Shown: positions 22,697 through 63,190 of the stretch, piece by piece | How positions within the stretch are numbered: the stretch's first letter is position 1 | How the letters are laid out: each line of letters starts with the position of its first letter | DNA from: Trichosphaerium sp. ATCC 40318 | Taxonomy: Eukaryota; Protista; Tubulinea | Length of the DNA stretch: 64,000 nt | NCBI GenBank assembly: GCA_038496445.1 | Contig: JALMLS010000062.1 | Coordinates: 62,001 to 126,000, forward strand | Direction of reading: 5' to 3' | Position numbers and translations under genes: made by a program | The notes under the pieces: generated by a model | Seen by the model: only the letters and a program-made list of their open reading frames with translations | Database searches by the model: none | Told to the model about the DNA's origin: nothing

Positions 22697-23746
22697 CTAA
22701 AACTTAAAAGTGTACATACCGTATTTTAGATTCATAGAGCATTTTCGGTATTGGGTGCATTGTATTGTCACCTTTTTACAATACACAATTTCAATGTGAT
22801 GAACGTTAAAATCCACAAGTGCCTTTATACCTTCATCTGTTATGCTATTACACGCCTCTAATTTAATTGTATGAACACCTTTGAGGGTTTTGATTGCTTC
22901 ATCTGTAACATGTTTTAAAGCCTTCAAGGTTATTGTATGAACACCTCCAAGTGTCTTAATACCACTGTCTCTTACTTGTCCACAGTTACACAAGGTAACT
23001 GAATGTACATTCTTAAGTGCTTTTATACCTCTATTTGTTATATTGGGACAAAATTCCAAGATGATAGAATGGACATCTTTCAACGCTTCAATGCCTTTGT
23101 CAGATAATCGACAACACTGTGATAATGTGATTTTATGAACACCTTCAAGTGCTTTGTAGCCTTCATCTGTTACTTGATCACATGTCATAATAGTAATGGT
23201 ATGAACACCTTTCAGCGCTTTTATACCTTCATCTGTTATTGAGCTACTCCTAAGGTATATTGTATGTACTCCTTTTAGTGCTTCGACACCTTTATCTGTT
23301 ATTCGTGTACATCCTTCTAACTTAATAGTGTGAACACCTTTGAGTGCTATGATAGCTTTGTCTGTTAAGTTTCTACACTCTACCAAAGAGATTGTATGAA
23401 CTCCTTTGAGAGCTTTGATACTCTTGTCTTTTATAGTATGATCACACAATGTAATATCATGGACTCCCACAAGGTACTTGTAGTTGTCATTAAATTTTGC
23501 ATGTGGATAAATTATAATCCTCTTGGTTTTTATAAATTTCGGTGCTTGCTTCCACAGTCTCTTTAGATTTTTTGGATTATTTATTGCTATAGTTGTGCGC
23601 TTGTATCCAAGGTACTTTCTTGTAATTGTGATGAACAGAGAGCATGTTCGAACAACAGATTGAAGAGAGGACTCGGGAATAAAGTTTAAAATAAGTACTA
23701 TTACCTCCACAGGCAAGTAATCAATAAATTGGGTACTTGACTTCAT
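22697..23746 (-). CDS. Intronless F-box plus about 10 'KGVHTI-L' leucine-rich repeats
   Basis: F-box IDYLPVEVIVLILNFI..SL.SV.RTCS.F; 21-22 aa repeats GVHTIxLxxCxxITDxGIKAL. Confidence 0.9.
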   Translation of the reverse strand: MKSSTQFIDYLPVEVIVLILNFIPESSLQSVVRTCSLFITITRKYLGYKRTTIAINNPKNLKRLWKQAPKFIKTKRIIIYPHAKFNDNYKYLVGVHDITLCDHTIKDKSIKALKGVHTISLVECRNLTDKAIIALKGVHTIKLEGCTRITDKGVEALKGVHTIYLRSSSITDEGIKALKGVHTITIMTCDQVTDEGYKALEGVHKITLSQCCRLSDKGIEALKDVHSIILEFCPNITNRGIKALKNVHSVTLCNCGQVRDSGIKTLGGVHTITLKALKHVTDEAIKTLKGVHTIKLEACNSITDEGIKALVDFNVHHIEIVYCKKVTIQCTQYRKCSMNLKYGMYTFKF

Positions 23747-24015: not shown

Positions 24016-24846
24016 ATGTTGGCGACATATAACATTAAACCACATCAACAGTTGCCACCAGAGATGTTCATGCGTATTCTACGTTATCTCAATAGAAAGA
24101 ACCGAATTACAGCTTCTGCAGTATCTCACCTATTCAACGCTTTAATTCGCCATCATATTGGTTTTGATTGGTTAACATTATCCACATCATCGGACTACCG
24201 CTTTCTTGTAGGGAGCCCGTTACTTAAAAACACCACAATCGAAATTGACTTTGCTAATCCTCCATCACAAGGTGACCTGGCTTGTCTCAGAGGTGTTCAC
24301 TCCATAAATCTGGATTTTTTAGGTATTACAGATACACAGATACTTGAGCTAGTAAAAGATGGAGAGCATGATATTCACGTGATATCATTGGGCAATGCAG
24401 ATATAACAGATGTTTCACTACATGCACTCAGTGGTGTACACACCATTGATCTTTTATCTTGTTACAGAATTACTGTTGAAGGAATAAAAGCGCTTAAAGA
24501 TGTACATGAGATCACAGTCTCCAATCCAAAAGATTCATGGCTCAATCATCTTTGTAATATACACACTGTTAATATTTATGGTGCTGGAAAAATTACAGAT
24601 GATGGTCTCAAAACATTAACCAATGTCAAACATCTTGATTTGTGTGATAGAAGTATTGGTGAAAGTACAATAACAGACTCGGGTTTGAAGACATTGGTAA
24701 ATCTTGAACACTTGACACTTTCACATTGCTACACAATTACTAAATCGTGTTTGAAACATATGACTTCTCTTAGAACCATTAAAATCACCAAAAGCCTGAT
24801 ATCAAAAGATGATGTAGATGCGTTGGGTATAACTTGGATTGATTAG
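24016..24846 (+). CDS. Intronless F-box plus LRR protein (diverged paralog), divergently transcribed from 22697-23746
   Basis: F-box QLPPEMFMRILRYL...ITASAVSHLF; repeats such as SGVHTIDLLSCYRITVEGIKAL. Confidence 0.88.
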   Translation: MLATYNIKPHQQLPPEMFMRILRYLNRKNRITASAVSHLFNALIRHHIGFDWLTLSTSSDYRFLVGSPLLKNTTIEIDFANPPSQGDLACLRGVHSINLDFLGITDTQILELVKDGEHDIHVISLGNADITDVSLHALSGVHTIDLLSCYRITVEGIKALKDVHEITVSNPKDSWLNHLCNIHTVNIYGAGKITDDGLKTLTNVKHLDLCDRSIGESTITDSGLKTLVNLEHLTLSHCYTITKSCLKHMTSLRTIKITKSLISKDDVDALGITWID

Positions 24847-28300: not shown

Positions 28301-31300
28301 TTATGTTTGATTCAGGTAAGGCCAAACTCTATAACGAAAGTAAGAGAAGTCAACAAGACGAAACAAAGCCTTCTGTACCTCAGTAAATACTGGAATGACA
28401 TCTTCGATTAATTTAGATCCAAGACGGCTTGTAATCTCTCCAATAGATTTACTTGCAAGGTGCACGTGATCAGGATTTTCGCTACCTATGACAGTGGTTG
28501 TTAGTGTTTGATGTCTCGGTACAGGAGGCAAACAAATGGTTTCGTACCGAGTAATCCTACAGCTCTTTTGACAAGTACAGGTACAATTATCTTTAGCGCT
28601 TTAAGAGGGAACTTAATTGAAACACTCTCCCTCCAAGTAGCATGTGCAGTACTGATAACACGCGGGTTAACATCTGTACGTAACAGGTACATTGATGCCA
28701 ATAAATCAGACGCTCTTGACTTGCCAATAACTTCAAAGATATCTAAAAAAAGCGAGGGTAAGCAATCACAAGATTGGTGAAAAAAACGCATACCGAGTTG
28801 TTCTTCAATGTTTGGATTCTTAGTGAGCTTCTCTGTTAGTTTCTCTGTTAACTGTAATGCACTACGCCTTATACGCCAGTTCTCATGGAAGAAGCTTCTT
28901 TGTAGAGTAGGTAGTAGTAAATCTAGAGATACTTCTGCGTATTCTGTAACAATAGATTTACCAGCTTCTAAAGCTGCTGTTCTTACAGCTTCTAAACATA
29001 GAGATTAATAAAAATATCGGTACAGACAACGTACCTTTGTCATCAGAAAGACCAGTCAAAATGATAGGAAGGATTGTAGGTAGGTAAGGATGCATACGAG
29101 CTCCCATGGCTCTAGGTAAAAAGCGCCATACTTCTTGGTATCCCTTTTTTTTTGTGGTATTAGTACAACGCCAAGATTCAGTTTCTTTGGGCAAATGTCG
29201 TACTTGTCTGCTCTCAAATTGATCTGAAGCACAACCTTCAATGACTTTATCCAAAATTTCATCATCAAATCTGCTTAGAGGTAAACCTTGAATAATTTCT
29301 GCCAAAGCTTGTGCAGCACCTAAACAACTTTCTTAGCAAGACTTTCCAACAAAAAAGTTGCGACTACTCAAAGTTAGACAAAAACATACCACTTCTTTTA
29401 GCCTCTGATTCACCACCACTTAGTTGAGTAAACAACCAAGGTATCATATCGGCAAACTCTTCTTCACCAACACCTGTATCACAAAAAGTCAGAAAAATCA
29501 ATAACTTTGTTTAATTGGTTTGTCTGGTCTTCTAACTTACCTTTAACAAGTGATCCAAGTGCGCGTGCAGCAAAAGCACGGTTCATAGGAATTGTATCTG
29601 TAACAATTTCACGCAATCGGTCTAAAAGTTCAGAGAAATATGGTCTCAAAATAGACGTCTTTGTCAATTTTGACATATTTCCGACAAGTGAAACAGCCAT
29701 ACGCTTAGTCTCTGCTTCTCTAGTTTTCATAGCATTTAATACAAGAGACATAAGCATAGATAAACTAGCTGCATCTATTTGATGGACGAAATTTGTGCTC
29801 TTCAAATCTGAAAGCGCTTTGTTTTGAAATTTAGCAGGTGCTCTGATTGCTTTGATAATAAGAGGAACATGACGTTTGAGCTCAGGGTTACGAATAACAG
29901 TGCCAATCTTACCAAAAGAAGCAATAGCAGCTTGTTCAACCTGGAGAGAAAGGTAAGAGTAAATTCGCCATAGATAAAGACGCTGACTTGTTTTGACAAT
30001 CAAAAAAAATTACAAAAAAAGAATAGCTCCGAGAGGAATCGAACCTCCACCTACGGCTTATGAGACCGCTATGCTTTCCGTTACACCACAAAGCTGTTTG
30101 TGCTTGTTAAGAAGGTGCTGGAATATAGCCGCCGCAAAAAAGCAGTATCACGTGCGTAGGAGATCAGAAAAGGAAGTAGCACTGGAAATGACAGTTTTTC
30201 ATTGAAAACCATAACAAAAATTTTACCTTTAGATCAGCATCGAATACTGCTTTACGCAATAGTGGTACAATATCTGGAAGTAATATAGCGAGTTGCTTAG
30301 GTTGTGCATTTGCCATACTACCAACCAAGTTAAGCGCACAAACCTTTTTATGAGATTTGGTTGCTTTCATTGCAGCAATAACCACTAATGGATCATGTTA
30401 GACAGCTAATATTGCTATTGGTGTAATTAACGCACGTGGTAGAACTCGTTTTGAACAATAAGGTCCAACATTAGCCATAATCTCACGCGAGGCTTCAACA
30501 GCAGCTGTACGAACACGTTCATTGCGGTCACCAACAGAGTCAAGTAGAGTAGGAAGTACATGCTCAACGTAAGGATCAAACAATGTACCCAAAGTTGTAG
30601 GCAGTACTTTAAGCTAACAAAAATGTAAGTTGACACCATGGACAGGCAGTAAACTACAACTGCCAATGGGCTTACCATAACAAGTGCACCCTCTTTGACA
30701 TCAATATCTTTACTATTAGCATACTCTTTAAGACGTGCGAATATGTTGTTATCCTTCAATGAAGTAATACCAAGTCCCTTGGCTAAACCACCAACACCAT
30801 ATCCAGCACCACGCTTGACATACTTTTCTGCATTGGAAGTAGCCTTAAAAAAATCTATCAATGCCCTGAACGAGTGAAATATAATTGTCTACCTTTTCTA
30901 ATAGTTTATCTATCAATTCTTGAGCCTGTGGTCTTTGTTTGACAATAAGTGCTGCCAAACACTTTGATACAGACTAACAAATCAATTAATATAAGAAAGA
31001 TTAACAATTACTTACACGTTGTACACGCTCTGCATTAGTAGAAAGAGTTTCCAGTAATGTGTCAACAATCTTTTCAATCTAAAGCACAACTTGTGAGCAT
31101 AGAACTTAATATAATGTATAACGTACGTTCTCATCGTCATCATTGAGATGTGTACCAAGAGTACCAAGGAAAACAGCAACAGATTCACGCACTTTATGTT
31201 CTGCAGGAGAACTTGGTGTCTGAGTCTCCAAAAAGTTTCCTAAAGACAAACACCATTAACAACATCCTTTCAACGTTTGTTTGTTTGTTTTTGACGTACC

Positions 31301-36438: not shown

Positions 36439-36893
36439 TGCATTGAACGAGCTATTAAATTTCTCAAAGGACTAAAGAGAAAAACACCGACCACGTCATT
36501 TCTTGAACCATCCTACATTTTTTACAAAAATGATGTGGCACTTGCGCCGAATTGATACATTACAACAACAATCTAAATGCCCAAGAACTTGACATCAAAA
36601 ATTTTTTTTTTTAACGATGATTTCTTCCTTTCTTTCTCTCAGCGCTGCGATCATTTGAAAGGTTAGTGGTTGAAAGTTGTGTTGTCGAGTCTAAATGTGG
36701 TGTATTTGGGCGTTTGCAGTCAAGAACAGTATTTTGGAACAATTTCGAACTTTACCACAGGCTTTTCGTTGAACGTTGAAGCTTACTTAATATTTTGCCA
36801 AGCCTCAAGTTACAATTCCAAGTACTTGCCTTGTGCCCACAGTTCCTAGCCTTCGAAGCTTTCATACCTAAAAAATACATTGGCTTTAACACC

Positions 36894-38111
36894 ATGGAAG
36901 ATCACGCTCAAATCAATTTGCTACGCCTCCCAGTAGAGCTACAGCTAGATATATTAGATTTAGACCCTGGATTAGACCTAAAATGGGCTCTTTTATCTAA
37001 ACGGACGGCAATGATGTTAAAATATGATGAAAACCTCAAAAAACATGGAAAATGGGTTAAATACATTGCAACATGTCAGTCAGATGAAAACCGTTATGTC
37101 AATAAAGAATTTCAAGTCGTAGTACAAGAGAACTGGCAACACGGTGAACGACATGGAGACTATAAACGCTATTATGAAAACGGCCAACTAAAGGAACATT
37201 GTTCTTTTTTTCGAGGAAAAACAAACGGAGAGTGTAGATGTTGGTATGGTAATGGCACTTTAGCGGTATCTTGTAGCTATTTAAATGGAAACCTTAATGG
37301 AGAATGTAAGCATTTTCATAAGAAGATAGGTGAAGCTGTACTGAAGAAGTATTGTATCTATGACAACGGTAAAATAGTTGGAGAGTTCAGGACTTGGCAT
37401 TCAAATAAGGTATTGGATGAAAAGTGTTTTTTTGAGAATGGCGTACAAGAAGGAGAATATAAAAAATGGAATGTCCACAGCCAATTAATTGAAGAGTGTT
37501 TTTACATTAAAGGAGAGAAAGATGGAGAGTATAAGAGATGGCATCAAAATGGAGCGTTAGCTGAAAAGTGTTTCTATGTTAAAGGAGTTAAACAAGGGGA
37601 GTATAGACAATGGTATGAAACCTCAACAGATAAGCAAAGGTACACTTATGTTGATGGTGTTTTGGAAGGTAGTTATACTACTTGGTACTCTAATGGTACT
37701 CTTGAGGTTCATTGTAATTATAAAGACGGTTTAAGAGAAGGTGAATATGATTGGTATTTTGAGGGTGTTTTAACAAAAAAGACAAACTATGTTAGTGGGA
37801 GGATTGAAGGAGAGCAAAAGAGTTGGCATCCAAATGGTAAATTATATGAACAATTTCATTTTAGGAACGGTAAGATGGAAGGCAATTATAAGCAATGGCA
37901 TGATAATGGTACGTTATGGAAACAACAAAGCTATGTAAAAGGGAAAAGAGAAGGAAATTATTTACAATGGTATAAAGATGGTTCACTAGAGGTTGAATGT
38001 GTTTATGTAAATGATAAGGCGGAAGGTGTATCTAAAGTATATGATACTGAGGGTAACTTGATACCATTACTGTACACAGAATACCGTGATTACAGAAGGA
38101 ATAAAGAGTGA
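36894..38111 (+). CDS. Intronless F-box-like plus about 13 MORN-variant (YwqK-type) repeats
   Basis: N-terminal LLRLPVELQLDIL...WALLSKR; 24-aa repeats GxxxGEYKxWxxNGxLxxxCxYxx. Confidence 0.88.
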   Translation: MEDHAQINLLRLPVELQLDILDLDPGLDLKWALLSKRTAMMLKYDENLKKHGKWVKYIATCQSDENRYVNKEFQVVVQENWQHGERHGDYKRYYENGQLKEHCSFFRGKTNGECRCWYGNGTLAVSCSYLNGNLNGECKHFHKKIGEAVLKKYCIYDNGKIVGEFRTWHSNKVLDEKCFFENGVQEGEYKKWNVHSQLIEECFYIKGEKDGEYKRWHQNGALAEKCFYVKGVKQGEYRQWYETSTDKQRYTYVDGVLEGSYTTWYSNGTLEVHCNYKDGLREGEYDWYFEGVLTKKTNYVSGRIEGEQKSWHPNGKLYEQFHFRNGKMEGNYKQWHDNGTLWKQQSYVKGKREGNYLQWYKDGSLEVECVYVNDKAEGVSKVYDTEGNLIPLLYTEYRDYRRNKE

Positions 38112-52043: not shown

Positions 52044-53418
<1,375 letters not shown>

Positions 53419-60198: not shown

Positions 60199-63190
60199 TT
60201 ATTTTACATGTAGGTGGTACGAATAATCATCAACTTCTTTGAACTCTTGTTCCGTCTTTTTCTTATTATTGCGTAAGCAACCAACCCAATGACAGCAACA
60301 ACAATTATTATTCCAATGACTAAAGCACCGATATGAATAGGCTTCAGTGTTCGTGCTGGAGCTTCTAAAAAAACCCAACATTTGCCACAAAAATAGAGTG
60401 AAAAAAACTAAGTCTGACGTACTGTCTGCTTTGTATTCTGGAACGTCTTGTGTAGCAGAAATAGCAACGCCAACTTCTTGTTTATCTTGAGGATAGTATT
60501 GGTATGCTAATGTGTATTGACCTATGTTCTTTGTGCAACTAGATTTAACTACAACGACATTACCATGTTGTAGTTTTTCTGCAAACAAAGTGCTAGTGGA
60601 TACTCGGCCAAGAAGAACGAAAAAGCTGTTTCTTCTTAGCGTACCCTTCCTAATTAGGTCCCAACACGTACTTTCTCACTTTATTTTGTTCCCGAAGCTC
60701 ATCGTATGGTAAATATAGTGTAATAGAATGTTGTAAAAGTTTATACTGCGGAACAAGTGTGCTACTGATGGAAAAATTTCCACTAACTCAAGACTATAAG
60801 TATCAAAACTGAGGGTTAACACTAAAATGGGTGCCAAAACAAAGTTCAGTATGGGTTGTTTCAAAGGGATTTATTGTGTCAATATATTGTTAAGATATAC
60901 GCCATAATACAGTATAGAAGCATCGCTAAGCCACTTAGAAATACCTTGCTTTGTGGCAGATGTATTCCGTAGACATACCATATTAACACCTTCTAACACT
61001 TTGATACCATCATCTGTAATGGCGTTGCAGTCGTCAAGGTTAATCATATAGGCTCCACCAAGTGATTTAATACCTTCATCTGTTACTGAAGTGTTGACAA
61101 GGTCAATAGTGTGGACACCACAAAGTGCATTGACGTTAGTTATTTGATTACAGTAACTAAGGCATATGTCATGAACGCCAGAAAGAAACTTGATGCCTTT
61201 GTCTGTGATAGCGTCACAGCAAGCAAGCTTAATGGTATGAACACCAGAAAGCGCTTGTAATCCTTTATCAGTTATACCTTCACAGTAACTGAGATTGATG
61301 GTATGAACACCAGAAAGCGCTTGTACACCTTTGTCTGTTACTAGAGTTCTGTACAAGTTAATTTCATGAACACCAGAAAGTGCTTGTAATCCTTTATCAG
61401 TTATAGGAGTGTTGTTCAGGCTAATAGTATGAACTCCAGAAAGGGATTTGATGCCTTCATCTGTAATTGTTTCGCAGGAGGCAAGTTGAATTGTATGAAC
61501 ACCTGAAAGTGCGTGCAATCCTTCATCAGTTATGGGAGTGGCAATCAAGTTAATGTTATGAACACCAGAGAGGGACTTGATACCTTCATCTGTAATTCCT
61601 TGACAATAACTAACATTGATGGTATGAACACCAGAAAGCCCTTTTAAGCCTTTGTCAGTTACATAAGTGCCTTCTAAGTTAATTTTATGAACGCCTGAGA
61701 GTGACTTGATGCCTTTGTCTGTGATAGCTCTGCAGTTCTCAAGGTCGATGGTGTGAACACCTGACAGTGCTCGTAAGCCGTTATCAGATATAGGAGTGTT
61801 GTTCAGGCTAATAGTATGGACTCCAGAAAGGGATTTGATGCCTTCATCTGTAATTGTTTTACAGAAGTCAAGACAAACGGTATGAATACCTTTGAGTGCT
61901 TTTACTCCCTTTTCTGTGACACCGCATAAAGTGAGGTCAACGGCATGAACACCAGAAAGTGCTTGGAAAGCTTCACCTGTAACAGAAGTGCCACAAAGCC
62001 TAAGAATATGAGCGCCTTGTAATGCTTTGATGCCTTCATCTGTTACTGAAGTGGTGGAAAGGCTAATAGTATGAACGCCTGAAAGTAGTTTTATAGCTTC
62101 ATCACTGATATTACAGCGGTCAAGCTTAATGGTATGAACACCAGTCAGTGATTTGACACCTTCATCAGTTACTGAAGTGCCGCTAAGGTTAATGGTATGA
62201 ACACCAGCCAGTGCTTTGACACCTTCATCTCTAATGTGTTGACAATCCGAAAGATCAATATTATGAACACCAGAAAGCGCTTGTAAGCCTTCATCTGTGA
62301 TATTCTTACAGTGCTTAAGGTTAATGGTGTGAACACCAGAAAGCAATTTAACACCTTCATCTGTGATAGTCATACAGTGCTCAAGGTTAATGGTATGAAC
62401 ACCTGAAAGTGATTTCATGCTTTCATCTGTAATGCTCACGCAATAAGAAAGATCAACGTTCTGAACACCAGATATTTCTTTGAGAATTATATCAGCGTGC
62501 TTGCCCCTTATTTTGATTTTTGTAGATTGTACACCGCAACTATGTCTTACGAGCGCTTTTGCCTGGTCGACAGTACGCAAGGTAACGCTTTCGTATCCAA
62601 TAACATCATGAATAATAGAAGCAAGCGCATTGCATGTTTGACAAGCTGCAAATCGCGCTTTTGTAGTTTTCCGTAGAATAAAAGCTAGAATCTCCGTAGG
62701 CAAGTCCAAAACGCATGTTTGTGCGCTAATATGATGTTTAGCGCACTAATTAGAGTATTAAAGCGTTTACGTACCTTGGTACGTTAGTTTTAGAGGCTAT
62801 CGACATCGTAATCAATAAATCTTTTGTTTTACCGGAGTTTGTTTTTATTTCGAAATAAAAGTCAGCTAATTTCGTGTTATTTTGTCCATGCATTTTGCGT
62901 GTCAAAAGTGAGATACATACAGCACTTTATATTGCTACAAGTTCATTGAGGATGAGCCCAAAACACCGGTTCTGTTCGGTCATTACAGTAGGTACAGAAT
63001 TATCAACATTACTGTCAACCAAGAACTCCAGGATCATTGCTAAAAGCAGACCTTTGCCCGGTGTTATTGTAGGTACAGAATGCGTGCCAATTAGTTTGAA
63101 GTGCGTTAGTTGACAAGTTGAAGGTGAAAGCAAAAGCAAGGTAATGCTAATAGGAAACCTCTAAACCAGTAGCTACTACATCTCCCACTA
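60199..63190 (-). pseudogene. Decayed type I membrane glycoprotein gene whose intron (about 60783-62774) contains the F-box/LRR ORF
   Basis: Phase-compatible exons on both sides of the LRR ORF: HYLAFAFTFNLS..FCTYNNTGQS|NVDNS..LNE(frameshift)TCSNIKCS|DFYFEIKT..MSIASKTNVPS|GNFSISSTLVPQY..|TLFAEKLQ..|..GALVIGIIIVVAVIGLVAYAIIRKRR. No start or signal-peptide exon was found. Confidence 0.55.
60871..62806 (-). CDS. F-box plus about 24 'SGVHTI-L' LRRs; short first exon (62775-62806) and one 1.86-kb exon (60871-62725)
   Basis: The long ORF has no ATG of its own before the F-box. ATG 62806 MSIASKTNVP-AG|GTACGT joins in frame through the 49-nt intron 62726-62774 to AQTCVLDLPTEILAFIL. Confidence 0.88.

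Follow-up and report, generated by a model that had tools for sequence, protein, structure and literature searches.

An intronless open reading frame (ORF) for an F-box/leucine-rich repeat (LRR) protein, found in the 64,000-nt stretch of DNA analysed here (hereafter, the window), may owe its start codon to the first coding exon of another gene. In the explanation that we tentatively favour, giving it slightly less than an even chance, this LRR ORF occupies the former first intron of a small membrane-protein gene, has lost its own ATG and uses the first coding exon of that gene. Nested genes and exon capture are already well-known phenomena. If the shared exon is real, the locus would be a clean and small case of an intronless copy gaining a start by borrowing a host exon, in a microbial eukaryote whose introns are numerous and tiny, and it would give a handle on the spread of F-box/LRR repeat families. 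Its main present value is a corrected gene model, made of a two-exon F-box/LRR gene and a flagged headless fragment of a membrane-protein gene. All the features of the locus are on the minus strand, and the coordinates of the original prediction, made from the DNA letters, all hold, each of its splice sites, phases and peptides having been recovered in the sequence; the anatomy, phases and splice-site quality described below, as well as the assignment to a family, are direct observations. The F-box/LRR gene is composed of the following elements:

62775 to 62806, minus strand: mini-exon 1, with its ATG at 62806-62804, ten codons (MSIASKTNVP) plus AG, phase 2
62726 to 62774, minus strand: intron of 49 nt, GTACGT ... 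CTAAT / GCTAAAC ... TTAG, the acceptor AG ending at 62726
60871 to 62725, minus strand: exon 2, the intronless F-box/LRR ORF, 617 codons plus TAA
about 62709 to 62599, minus strand: F-box, within exon 2
62499 to 60925, minus strand: about 27 LRRs, with 63-66 and 129-nt periodicity
60870 to 60875, minus strand: AATAAA on the LRR stop codon, the likely LRR poly(A) signal

As had been noticed originally, no ATG precedes the F-box in the LRR ORF. The first in-frame methionine is residue 103, already past the F-box, and a stop codon in the same frame lies only 7 codons before the acceptor at 62726. An F-box protein would be possible from this ORF only through splicing to the mini-exon, a conclusion that the sequence supports. 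The donor proposed for this splice (AG/GTACGT, intron from 62774, phase 2) is present and scores 12.7 bits (89th percentile of the 53 introns inferred in the window), the LRR acceptor at 62726 scores 4.5 bits (17th percentile of the same set), and the length of 49 nt falls in the 42-102 nt span of these introns. The expected 62775/62725 junction is in frame and gives the peptide MSIASKTNVP-S-AQTCVLDLPTEIL. At the sequence level, this is the arrangement looked for in exon capture, with a host donor joined in frame to an acceptor just 5′ of an intronless ORF. The mini-exon itself is best read as a first exon, rather than an internal one.

The encoded protein has the two parts of the FBXL type: an N-terminal F-box of ~40 residues with the LPxE(I/L)...I motif and a three-helix pattern, and C-terminal cysteine-containing, RI-like LRRs. 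The LRR part matches Pfam LRR_6 (156 bits, E 1.8e-47) and, weakly, KDM2B. Taken alone, the focal F-box matches Pfam F-box-like with E 0.0045 and 17.2 bits, under the 24.3-bit cut-off; the F-box of a paralog at 24016 clears the Pfam cut-off (28.5 vs 20.5 bits). A profile of the N-terminal region, built from the focal copy, its paralogs and its relatives, found FBXL3 as the best PDB match (3.3e-5), followed by FBXL2, FBXL5 and FBXL17 (to 1e-3), with other F-box chains weaker. The locus reads as a complete, ordinary two-exon F-box/LRR gene, whose product, judging from its family, would be an SCF-type substrate receptor. As regards its AATAAA, this motif falls between -2 and +45 nt of the stop for 8 of 13 ORF ends, compared with an expectation of ~5%. 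Like FBXL2, FBXL3, FBXL5, FBXL17 and KDM2B, the focal protein starts with an F-box followed by cysteine-containing (LRR_6) repeats; it differs from these receptors in its ~27 repeats with recent internal duplication, in its F-box below the Pfam cut-off when taken alone, and in the position of its start codon on a separate mini-exon. Both paralogs in the window, as well as the database relatives, have an ATG of their own, placed 8-12 residues ahead of the LPxE(I/L) of the F-box. In place of this family ATG, the focal copy has ATT (62730-62728), abutting the acceptor AG. The best relatives share 34-48% identity with the LRR ORF over the aligned part only.

Downstream of the LRR stop codon (TAA, 60873-60871), a short spacer leads to the remains of a second coding unit:

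60783 to 60870, minus strand: spacer of 88 nt, with a TTAAC branch-like site and the acceptor TTAG, its AG at 60784-60783
60672 to 60782, minus strand: exon A, S-GNFSISSTLVPQYKLLQHSITLYLPYDELREQNKVR, phase 2 in and phase 2 out, donor GTACGT at 60671
60593 to 60671, minus strand: intron A/B of 79 nt, GTACGT ... CACTAG
60423 to 60592, minus strand: exon B, TLFAEKLQHGNVVVVKSSCTKNIGQYTLAYQYYPQDKQEVGVAISATQDVPEYKAD, donor GTACGT at 60422, phase 1
60365 to 60422, minus strand: intron B/C of 58 nt, GTACGT ... TTTTTTTAG, phase 1, donor 11.9 bits, acceptor 5.9 bits
60204 to 60364, minus strand: exon C, with stalk, transmembrane (TM) helix, RKRR and a 15-residue tail; TAA at 60206-60204
60332 to 60264, minus strand: TM helix IGALVIGIIIVVAVIGLVAYAII, in exon C
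60263 to 60252, minus strand: RKRR, in exon C, directly after the TM helix

The original prediction placed a second acceptor less than 90 nt past the LRR stop, and its AG indeed ends at 60783, 88 nt after the stop. This acceptor of exon A scores 7.5 bits, which corresponds to the 42nd percentile of the inferred introns and to about the 95th of all YAG sites. The alternative junction, 62775/60782, is likewise in frame as anticipated (...NVP-S-GNFSISSTLVPQY), continuing through two further exons to the TM helix and RKRR. Exons A-C total 146 codons (144 whole, two split by introns), with consistent phases and two GTACGT donors, and the codon score is coding-like in exons B and C. The best coding signal of the locus is that of exon B (0.25 per codon, 99th percentile of 757 ORFs of 35-75 codons; GC1 0.55, GC3 0.21), and the frame containing it stays open for ~163 codons, in a window of 64 kb with only 12 ORFs of at least 150 aa. 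Exon A has a neutral codon score (-0.01 per codon) and a coding-like GC1>GC2>GC3 pattern. The in-phase acceptor of intron A/B is weak (1.7 bits, 2nd percentile); a rival TTTGCAG acceptor 14 nt further downstream scores 4.4 bits, but it does not keep the phase and runs into a stop. In exon C, the TM helix is followed by a basic stop-transfer cluster, as in type I membrane proteins; the signal peptide of such a protein, however, would need a hydrophobic exon with an ATG and a usable phase-2 donor, and none was found from exon A to the stop of the kelch gene.

Exons A-C hold no in-frame ATG, and the 88-nt spacer is devoid of any ATG. Since the other intergenic gaps here measure 437 and 630 nt, 88 nt cannot fit a 3′ end, a promoter and a first exon; with neither a start of their own nor room for a promoter, these exons need a phase-2 donor. 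Some other ways of starting or joining them were considered and discarded. An independent start at ATG 60703 encodes MSFGNKIK and meets a stop ahead of the GTACGT donor; it would be workable only via an atypical GTGAGA donor and the weak acceptor. The alternative-frame ATG at 62630, which opens a signal-peptide-like ORF, is followed by a donor of only -1.4 bits. Splicing of the LRR ORF onto exons A-C, which would yield a TM-anchored LRR protein, finds no phase-compatible donor near the LRR 3′ end, and all the combinations hit stops.

A common first exon for the LRR gene and the membrane exons may explain these observations, on circumstantial grounds. From exon A to the stop of the kelch gene, no consensus phase-2 donor other than that at 62774 has an ATG ahead of it in open frame, and the spacer leaves exons A-C without an alternative start. 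The LRR ORF, for its part, needs the mini-exon splice to keep its F-box, and this splice has a strong donor and a 49-nt intron within the local range. The ATT of the focal copy, where paralogs and relatives have their own ATG, also favours sharing, as do the intact phases of exons A-C, the coding-like character of B and C, and an exon A acceptor (7.5 bits) that beats that of the LRR ORF (4.5 bits). The nesting in a long intron has a precedent in the window, a tRNA-Met inside an intron of ~285 nt. Against the shared exon, the phases would agree by chance in one case out of three, an intron of 1,992 nt is required vs 42-102 nt for the 53 inferred introns, and transcripts should already terminate at the AATAAA on the LRR stop, short of exon A. 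No signal peptide would be present on the membrane protein, the A/B junction depends on a 2nd-percentile acceptor beside a better out-of-phase one, there is no homolog of A-C to show the true 5′ exon, no target-site duplication, terminal repeat or A-tail surrounds the LRR ORF, and its composition does not differ from that of the other window genes. An LRR ORF within the intron, together with a shared first exon, is a reasonable reading of the sequence. As the simplest history for both units, we infer from it that the mini-exon and exons A-C share a common ancestry, and an order of events in which the LRR ORF came to sit within the former first intron of the membrane-protein gene and, its own ATG lost, would use the first coding exon of that gene. 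With the proximal acceptor and the LRR poly(A) signal probably capturing nearly all transcripts today, the membrane exons would have little or no expression.

The region upstream of the mini-exon had been interpreted as further, dead exons of the membrane gene. Two elements are relevant there:

62866 to 62920, minus strand: intron-like stretch of 55 nt, GTATGT ... TAG, whose removal would take out the ATG at 62893
62927 to 63139, minus strand: 70-codon ORF taken as a dead upstream exon, beginning with the hydrophobic run ITLLLLSPSTC

The mini-exon frame is open upstream to the acceptor at 62866, as originally described, whereas the internal-exon status deduced from it does no better than chance: ahead of Met 62806, only 33 codons are open (P roughly 0.1-0.3 at this composition), and an in-frame ATG at 62893-62891 inside the same open frame means that the mini-exon need not be internal. 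The intron-like stretch combines a donor of 10.2 bits with an acceptor of 2.7 bits (9th percentile of the 53 inferred introns), and its phase is mismatched with the preceding ORF. This 70-codon ORF does not stand out from chance as a dead exon either, with a codon score (-0.04 per codon) equal to the median for window ORFs of similar size; it matches nothing in Pfam and does not resemble exons A-C. The stop codon of this ORF falls within a TATAAAG motif (62931-62925) situated 125 nt ahead of the ATG at 62806; TATAAA is expected by chance in that span with a probability of ~9%. Among the other genes checked, no TATA box was found in the 200-nt upstream regions, except for one TATATA, 11 nt ahead of where a multi-pass membrane gene was approximately taken to start. 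A reassignment of TAG, which would allow reading through the M-stop-stop-LLV-stop peptide at 63180, is out, as TAG ends the paralogs at 22697 and 24846.

Among the competing explanations, a serious one, though on balance doubtful, is that two unrelated units lie side by side. The LRR gene would always have had its mini-exon, and the membrane exons would be the relic of a 5′-truncated neighbour, with promoter and first exon(s) lost by deletion or rearrangement and a phase that matches by chance. The self-sufficiency of the LRR gene (TATAAAG 125 nt before the ATG, strong donor, modal-length intron, AATAAA on the stop) agrees with this, together with the absence of insertion hallmarks, of the signal-peptide exon expected for a type I membrane protein and of any inferred intron near 2 kb in the window; the weak A/B acceptor and the neutral codon score of exon A would fit early decay. 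Yet three coincidences are needed, namely the phase match (1/3), an intronic breakpoint that spared both a branch site and a good acceptor, and 146 codons with four splice signals still unbroken, and no reason is given why only this family member is without its own ATG. We regard as quite improbable a live dual-output locus, where one promoter and one coding first exon would serve two unrelated proteins by choice of the 3′ splice site: the F-box/LRR protein through the 49-nt intron, and a tail-anchored membrane protein of ~158 residues through the 1,992-nt intron and read-through of the poly(A) signal. Tail-anchored proteins need no signal peptide under the topology rules, and a TM helix so near the C-terminus (within ~20 residues), with a basic tail behind it, would suit such anchoring; exons A-C are intact, and the distal acceptor outscores the proximal one. 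These points are countered by an intron ~20 times the local norm, an AATAAA placed on the LRR stop, the weak A/B acceptor and the lack of conservation evidence.

The full version of the original prediction, in which the mini-exon is an internal exon (acceptor 62866) and the membrane gene has five exons, the first of them (62927-63190) dead, looks very unlikely. The open frame from 62866 to the ATG, the 55-nt GTATGT...TAG stretch just upstream and the hydrophobic start of the 70-codon ORF (ITLLLLSPSTC) would suit it, but the open frame is chance-sized and holds the in-frame ATG at 62893, the 62866 acceptor reaches only 2.7 bits, and the GC1 of the extended exon is 0.24 vs 0.40-0.56 in local coding exons. 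In addition, the 70-codon ORF has the codon score of the chance median, resembles neither exons A-C nor anything in Pfam, and takes its "stop" from the TATAAAG motif. Finally, we find it hardly credible that exons A-C are no gene at all, either chance ORFs in the LRR 3′ flank or, as a variant, a sequence whose exon A acceptor is the trans-splice site of an operon. Nematode-type operons do show a comparable spacing between poly(A) signal and acceptor, which the 88 nt from AATAAA to the acceptor resemble, no homolog of exons A-C is available, and the codon score of exon A is neutral; a spliced-leader operon was nevertheless rejected because exons A-C lack an in-frame ATG. The chance origin has to face the ~163-codon open frame around exon B, rare in the window, the two perfect GTACGT donors with matching phases, the clean TM helix and RKRR obtained after splicing, and the 99th-percentile codon score of exon B.

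Homologs of the membrane gene were searched exon by exon, with the upstream and downstream pieces treated separately. A word search with exon B found no homolog, and a full HMMER search of 1.84 billion proteins with exons A-C produced repeat-summation matches only, none of them a credible homolog. All seven matches (E 1e-10 to 3e-4) are repeat proteins, six with Ig-like, PKD or Y_Y_Y repeats and the remaining one without any Pfam domain, and each score adds up 8-11 stretches, none above 12.8 bits. Such matches are only a lead for a possible beta-sandwich: no significant match to an Ig V-set-like domain was obtained, Pfam returned nothing for exons A and B, and exon C gave only TM-type noise. 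Neither a paralog of the membrane exons in the window (tblastn) nor a match in metagenome scans (mini-exon DNA; exon B protein pattern) was detected. A protein joining the upstream and downstream peptides, which the proposed membrane gene called for, was not found among these collections; they hold no close relative of the source genome (best LRR match at 34-48% identity), so the missing homolog is weak evidence. Smith-Waterman comparisons with shuffles gave no significant similarity between the upstream and downstream peptides, the best pair being the start of exon A against the end of exon B (p = 0.05 among six tests).

Regarding the origin of the LRR ORF, the proposal of an inserted copy is not borne out by its surroundings, which show no target-site duplication, terminal repeat or A-tail; the flanking repeats are short and of chance size, and no A-run follows the stop. 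Its composition matches that of the other window genes, and a foreign origin by composition is discarded, given a GC3 like theirs. The suggestion that the family colonises new loci fares no better: the window contains two further members, both old paralogs (26-27% identity over the N-terminal 100 residues), and neither is nested according to their flanks. The gene after the 22.7-kb paralog is the multi-pass membrane gene, which has its own ATG.

There are some known systems to which the locus can be compared. In the cholinergic locus, the first intron of ChAT houses the intronless VAChT gene, which reads in the direction of ChAT; the two share a 5′ exon and differ in the downstream acceptor chosen. 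The nesting proposed for the LRR ORF would likewise give two genes one first exon in common; the cholinergic exon is non-coding and both products are proven, whereas the exon here, whose sharing is deduced, would contribute the ATG and ten codons. In the TRIM5-CypA fusion (TRIMCyp), an intronless ORF is joined in frame to upstream host exons through an acceptor just 5′ of the ORF (PMC2279257). The proposed LRR protein would similarly start with host-encoded residues, in this case only ten codons of an orphan host gene, with no hallmarks of retroposition and as judged from sequence.

A third resemblance is to the repeat proteins of amoebal giant viruses (F-box, LRR, FNIP, MORN), families for which background is available (PMC5753266). 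Three of the best matches to the LRR ORF (P0001, P0004 and P0007) are on densely packed contigs, which encode topoisomerase IB, bacterial-type topoisomerase IA, RNA_pol_N and thymidylate synthase, and a moumouvirus F-box/FNIP protein was also matched. A scan of a viral contig collection recovered no close relative of the LRR ORF. It seems unlikely to us that an intronless LRR gene, from a family with its nearest database relatives in giant viruses, landed in the first intron of the host membrane-protein gene, lost its ATG and now depends on a ten-codon host exon, with one promoter, two proteins and a 2-kb intron. The identity to the giant-virus families is only 28-36%, and the GC3 and codon use of the window copies are like those of the other window genes.

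The F-box/LRR gene, taken alone and as read from its sequence, is a complete and ordinary two-exon gene. It lies in eukaryotic, intron-dense sequence (37.5% GC, zero N), where introns start at GTACGT, GTATGT or GTAAGT, end at TAG or CAG, carry a branch-like CTAAC, TTAAC or CTGAC, and measure 42-102 nt (n=53, inferred from ORF continuity across the window). The splice sites, phases and coordinates of the original prediction all hold, and the sequence anatomy of the locus is real.

Features of the locus, in minus-strand order
63245-63243, minus: stop TAA of a kelch-repeat gene (named by eye), AATAAA 12 nt beyond
437 nt: spacer between the kelch and F-box/LRR genes
62806-62775, minus: mini-exon, ATG at 62806, ten codons MSIASKTNVP plus AG, donor GTACGT from 62774, phase 2
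49 nt, minus: intron of the LRR gene, acceptor AG ending at 62726
60873-60871, minus: TAA ending the LRR ORF
88 nt: spacer between the F-box/LRR gene and the membrane exons
60783, minus: end of the exon A acceptor AG; split codon AG/T = Ser, then GNFSISSTLVPQY
60782-60672, minus: exon A, donor GTACGT, phase 2
79 nt, minus: intron A/B, acceptor CACTAG
60592-60423, minus: exon B, donor GTACGT, phase 1
58 nt, minus: intron B/C
60364-60207, minus: exon C, IGALVIGIIIVVAVIGLVAYAII, then RKRR, then a short tail
60206-60204, minus: stop of the three-exon membrane-protein gene
630 nt: spacer between the membrane and polyubiquitin genes
downstream of the membrane exons, minus: polyubiquitin gene, four units, two introns

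The split codon at the LRR junction (AG/C) encodes Ser and leads into AQTCVLDLPTEIL. As had been noticed, the LRR ORF lacks an ATG ahead of its F-box: a stop closes the frame just 7 codons upstream of the 62726 acceptor and the first in-frame Met is residue 103, past the F-box, so that an F-box protein would be possible only through the mini-exon splice. The donor of this intron scores 12.7 bits and its acceptor 4.5 bits (89th and 17th percentiles of the inferred introns, respectively); the same donor is also compatible with the acceptor at 60783, with an in-frame Ser at both junctions. The LRR stop codon is overlapped by AATAAA, a motif lying -2 to +45 nt from the stop in 8 of 13 ORF ends window-wide, against ~5% expected, and therefore the LRR gene would have its own 3′-end signal and the 3′ UTRs of this genome appear to be very short. 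Beyond its TAA, the LRR frame stays open for ~65 codons (60676-60870, minus strand, IPLKQPILNFVLAPILVLTL...; chance roughly 2%), with a codon score that is not coding-like.

The mini-exon had been regarded as an internal exon of the membrane-protein gene, preceded by dead exons, an idea that the sequence leaves unsupported. Its upstream frame is open for just 33 codons and holds an in-frame ATG at 62893, so the mini-exon can be explained simply as a first exon; the candidate acceptor at 62866 reaches 2.7 bits, and an exon extended to it would have a GC1 of 0.24, unlike the coding exons of the window. The supposed dead exons correspond to a 70-codon ORF (62927-63139) with a chance-median codon score, no family match in Pfam and no similarity to exons A-C, whose “stop” is a TATAAAG motif. 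This motif lies 125 nt upstream of the mini-exon ATG (chance ~9%), and the 200-nt upstream regions of the other genes checked lack a TATA box with one exception, a TATATA 11 nt ahead of the approximate start taken for a multi-pass membrane gene; as promoter evidence for the LRR gene it is weak. Upstream of the mini-exon there is also an 18-nt direct repeat (62983-63000 and 63064-63081, 89% identical, 81 nt apart).

The LRR ORF matches LRR_6 in Pfam (1.8e-47), where the F-box match is sub-threshold. An N-terminal profile of the focal copy, its paralogs and database relatives matched FBXL3 in the PDB (3.3e-5), also FBXL2, FBXL5 and FBXL17, and more weakly further F-box chains.

Paralogs and an F-box-like/MORN ORF in the window, and nearest relatives of the focal LRR protein in databases
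22697-23746, minus: F-box/LRR paralog, intronless, own ATG
24016-24846, plus: F-box/LRR paralog, intronless, own ATG
36795-38111, plus: F-box-like/MORN ORF, intronless, LPVELQLDIL motif, then MORN_2 repeats (3.9e-31); own ATG at residue 34 of the ORF
database contig L001, 575-3007: closest relative
database contig L002, 8001-9404: closest relative
database contig L004, 8001-9563: closest relative

In both paralogs, a head-to-head pair with 270 nt between them, and in the F-box-like/MORN ORF, the LPxE(I/L) motif follows an own Met by 8-12 residues. The focal copy carries ATT (62730-62728) at the paralogs' Met position, directly adjoining the acceptor AG; that an original ATG was lost there is a lead, not a demonstration. 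The proposal that this family colonises new loci finds no backing in the window, where the remaining members are old, non-nested paralogs; the 22.7-kb paralog is followed downstream (~22470-21010, minus strand) by a multi-pass membrane gene that has an ATG of its own. In a protein database of 5.8 billion clusters, from which the proteins of this genome itself are absent, the closest match to the LRR protein has 34-48% identity over the aligned part. Three of the best matches (P0001, P0004 and P0007) sit on densely packed contigs carrying topoisomerase IB, bacterial-type topoisomerase IA, RNA_pol_N and thymidylate synthase, and these contigs, which carry the closest relatives, resemble giant viruses. 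The matches further include a moumouvirus F-box/FNIP protein, and amoebal giant viruses are known to carry such repeat families (PMC5753266). No close relative of the LRR family turned up in a scan of a collection of viral contigs.

Exons A-C have the look of genuine coding sequence. Exon B lies in a frame open for ~163 codons, in a window with just 12 ORFs of 150 aa or more; exons B and C reach the 99th and 90th codon-score percentiles among 757 ORFs of 35-75 codons; exons A and B follow GC1>GC2>GC3 as other coding exons of the window do, and in the spliced order a clean TM helix appears, followed by a basic cluster. Judged by searches run exon by exon, they are orphans: word search and Pfam gave no match, and a full search of 1.84 billion proteins gave seven (E 1e-10 to 3e-4), all long repeat proteins (six with V-set or Y_Y_Y/PKD repeats, one without a Pfam domain), whose scores add up 8-11 stretches, none above 12.8 bits. 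Totals of this kind are inflated by near-identical repeats, and an Ig-like beta-sandwich is therefore kept as a lead only. The neutral codon score of exon A and the 1.7 bits of exon B's sole in-phase acceptor hint that the gene may be decaying; at the latter site (60578-60593, minus strand) a stronger TTTGCAG acceptor 14 nt downstream is out of phase and leads to a stop. An alternative-frame ORF in the F-box region (62550-62630, minus strand, MRLLLLFMMLLDTKALPCVLS), signal-peptide-like, ends at a phase-2 GTAAGA donor of -1.4 bits and was taken as chance.

Where does the membrane gene start? No ATG occurs in the 88-nt spacer, nor any in frame in exons A-C, and we consider that exon sharing with the LRR gene is reasonable but unproven; a history in which the LRR gene lies within a membrane-gene intron, behind a shared first exon, falls a little short of an even call. 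Exon A requires a phase-2 donor; of the consensus ones as far as the kelch stop, 62774 alone has an ATG upstream in an open frame. The exon A acceptor (7.5 bits) is stronger than that of the LRR gene, and the spacer contains a branch-like TTAAC. With neighbouring gaps of 437 and 630 nt, 88 nt would be too short to accommodate a 3′ end together with promoter and first exon. Moreover, the focal copy alone among the family members seen in the window lacks its own ATG, and nesting has a local precedent, a tRNA-Met(CAT) (30024-30095, minus strand) in an unusually long intron of ~285 nt (about 29940-30225) of a multi-exon, same-strand GCN1/EF3-HEAT-like gene.

However, the phase match has a 1/3 chance, the intron would be 1,992 nt long, ~20x the local norm, exon A is preceded by the LRR poly(A) signal, and the membrane protein would lack a signal peptide. 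No relative showing the true 5′ exon was found in the window, protein databases or metagenome scans. A chance juxtaposition of the LRR gene with a truncated membrane-gene relic is a serious though rather doubtful explanation. As for exon capture after insertion, the in-frame junction is present, but the LRR ORF is flanked by neither a target-site duplication nor terminal repeats nor an A-tail, and the LRR copies do not differ in GC3 from other window genes.

Nesting and exon sharing are already known as a class of event. In the ChAT/VAChT layout, a gene lies in the first intron and the first exon is common to both, as would be the case for the LRR gene if the shared-exon history is true. In TRIM5-CypA, host exons are joined to an intronless ORF through an acceptor directly upstream of it (PMC2279257); the LRR ORF would likewise be joined to a host exon through its adjacent acceptor. 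Membership is established for neither: the LRR junction is in the sequence, the insertion hallmarks are absent, and a single host gene spanning the mini-exon and exons A-C is putative; if true, the locus would be a further case of a known class, with a TRIM5-CypA-type mechanism and a ChAT/VAChT-type layout. Elsewhere in the window, an exon at 52847-53170 (minus strand) resembles, by eye, the haloalkane dehalogenase/Renilla-luciferase family, which would be unusual for a eukaryote.
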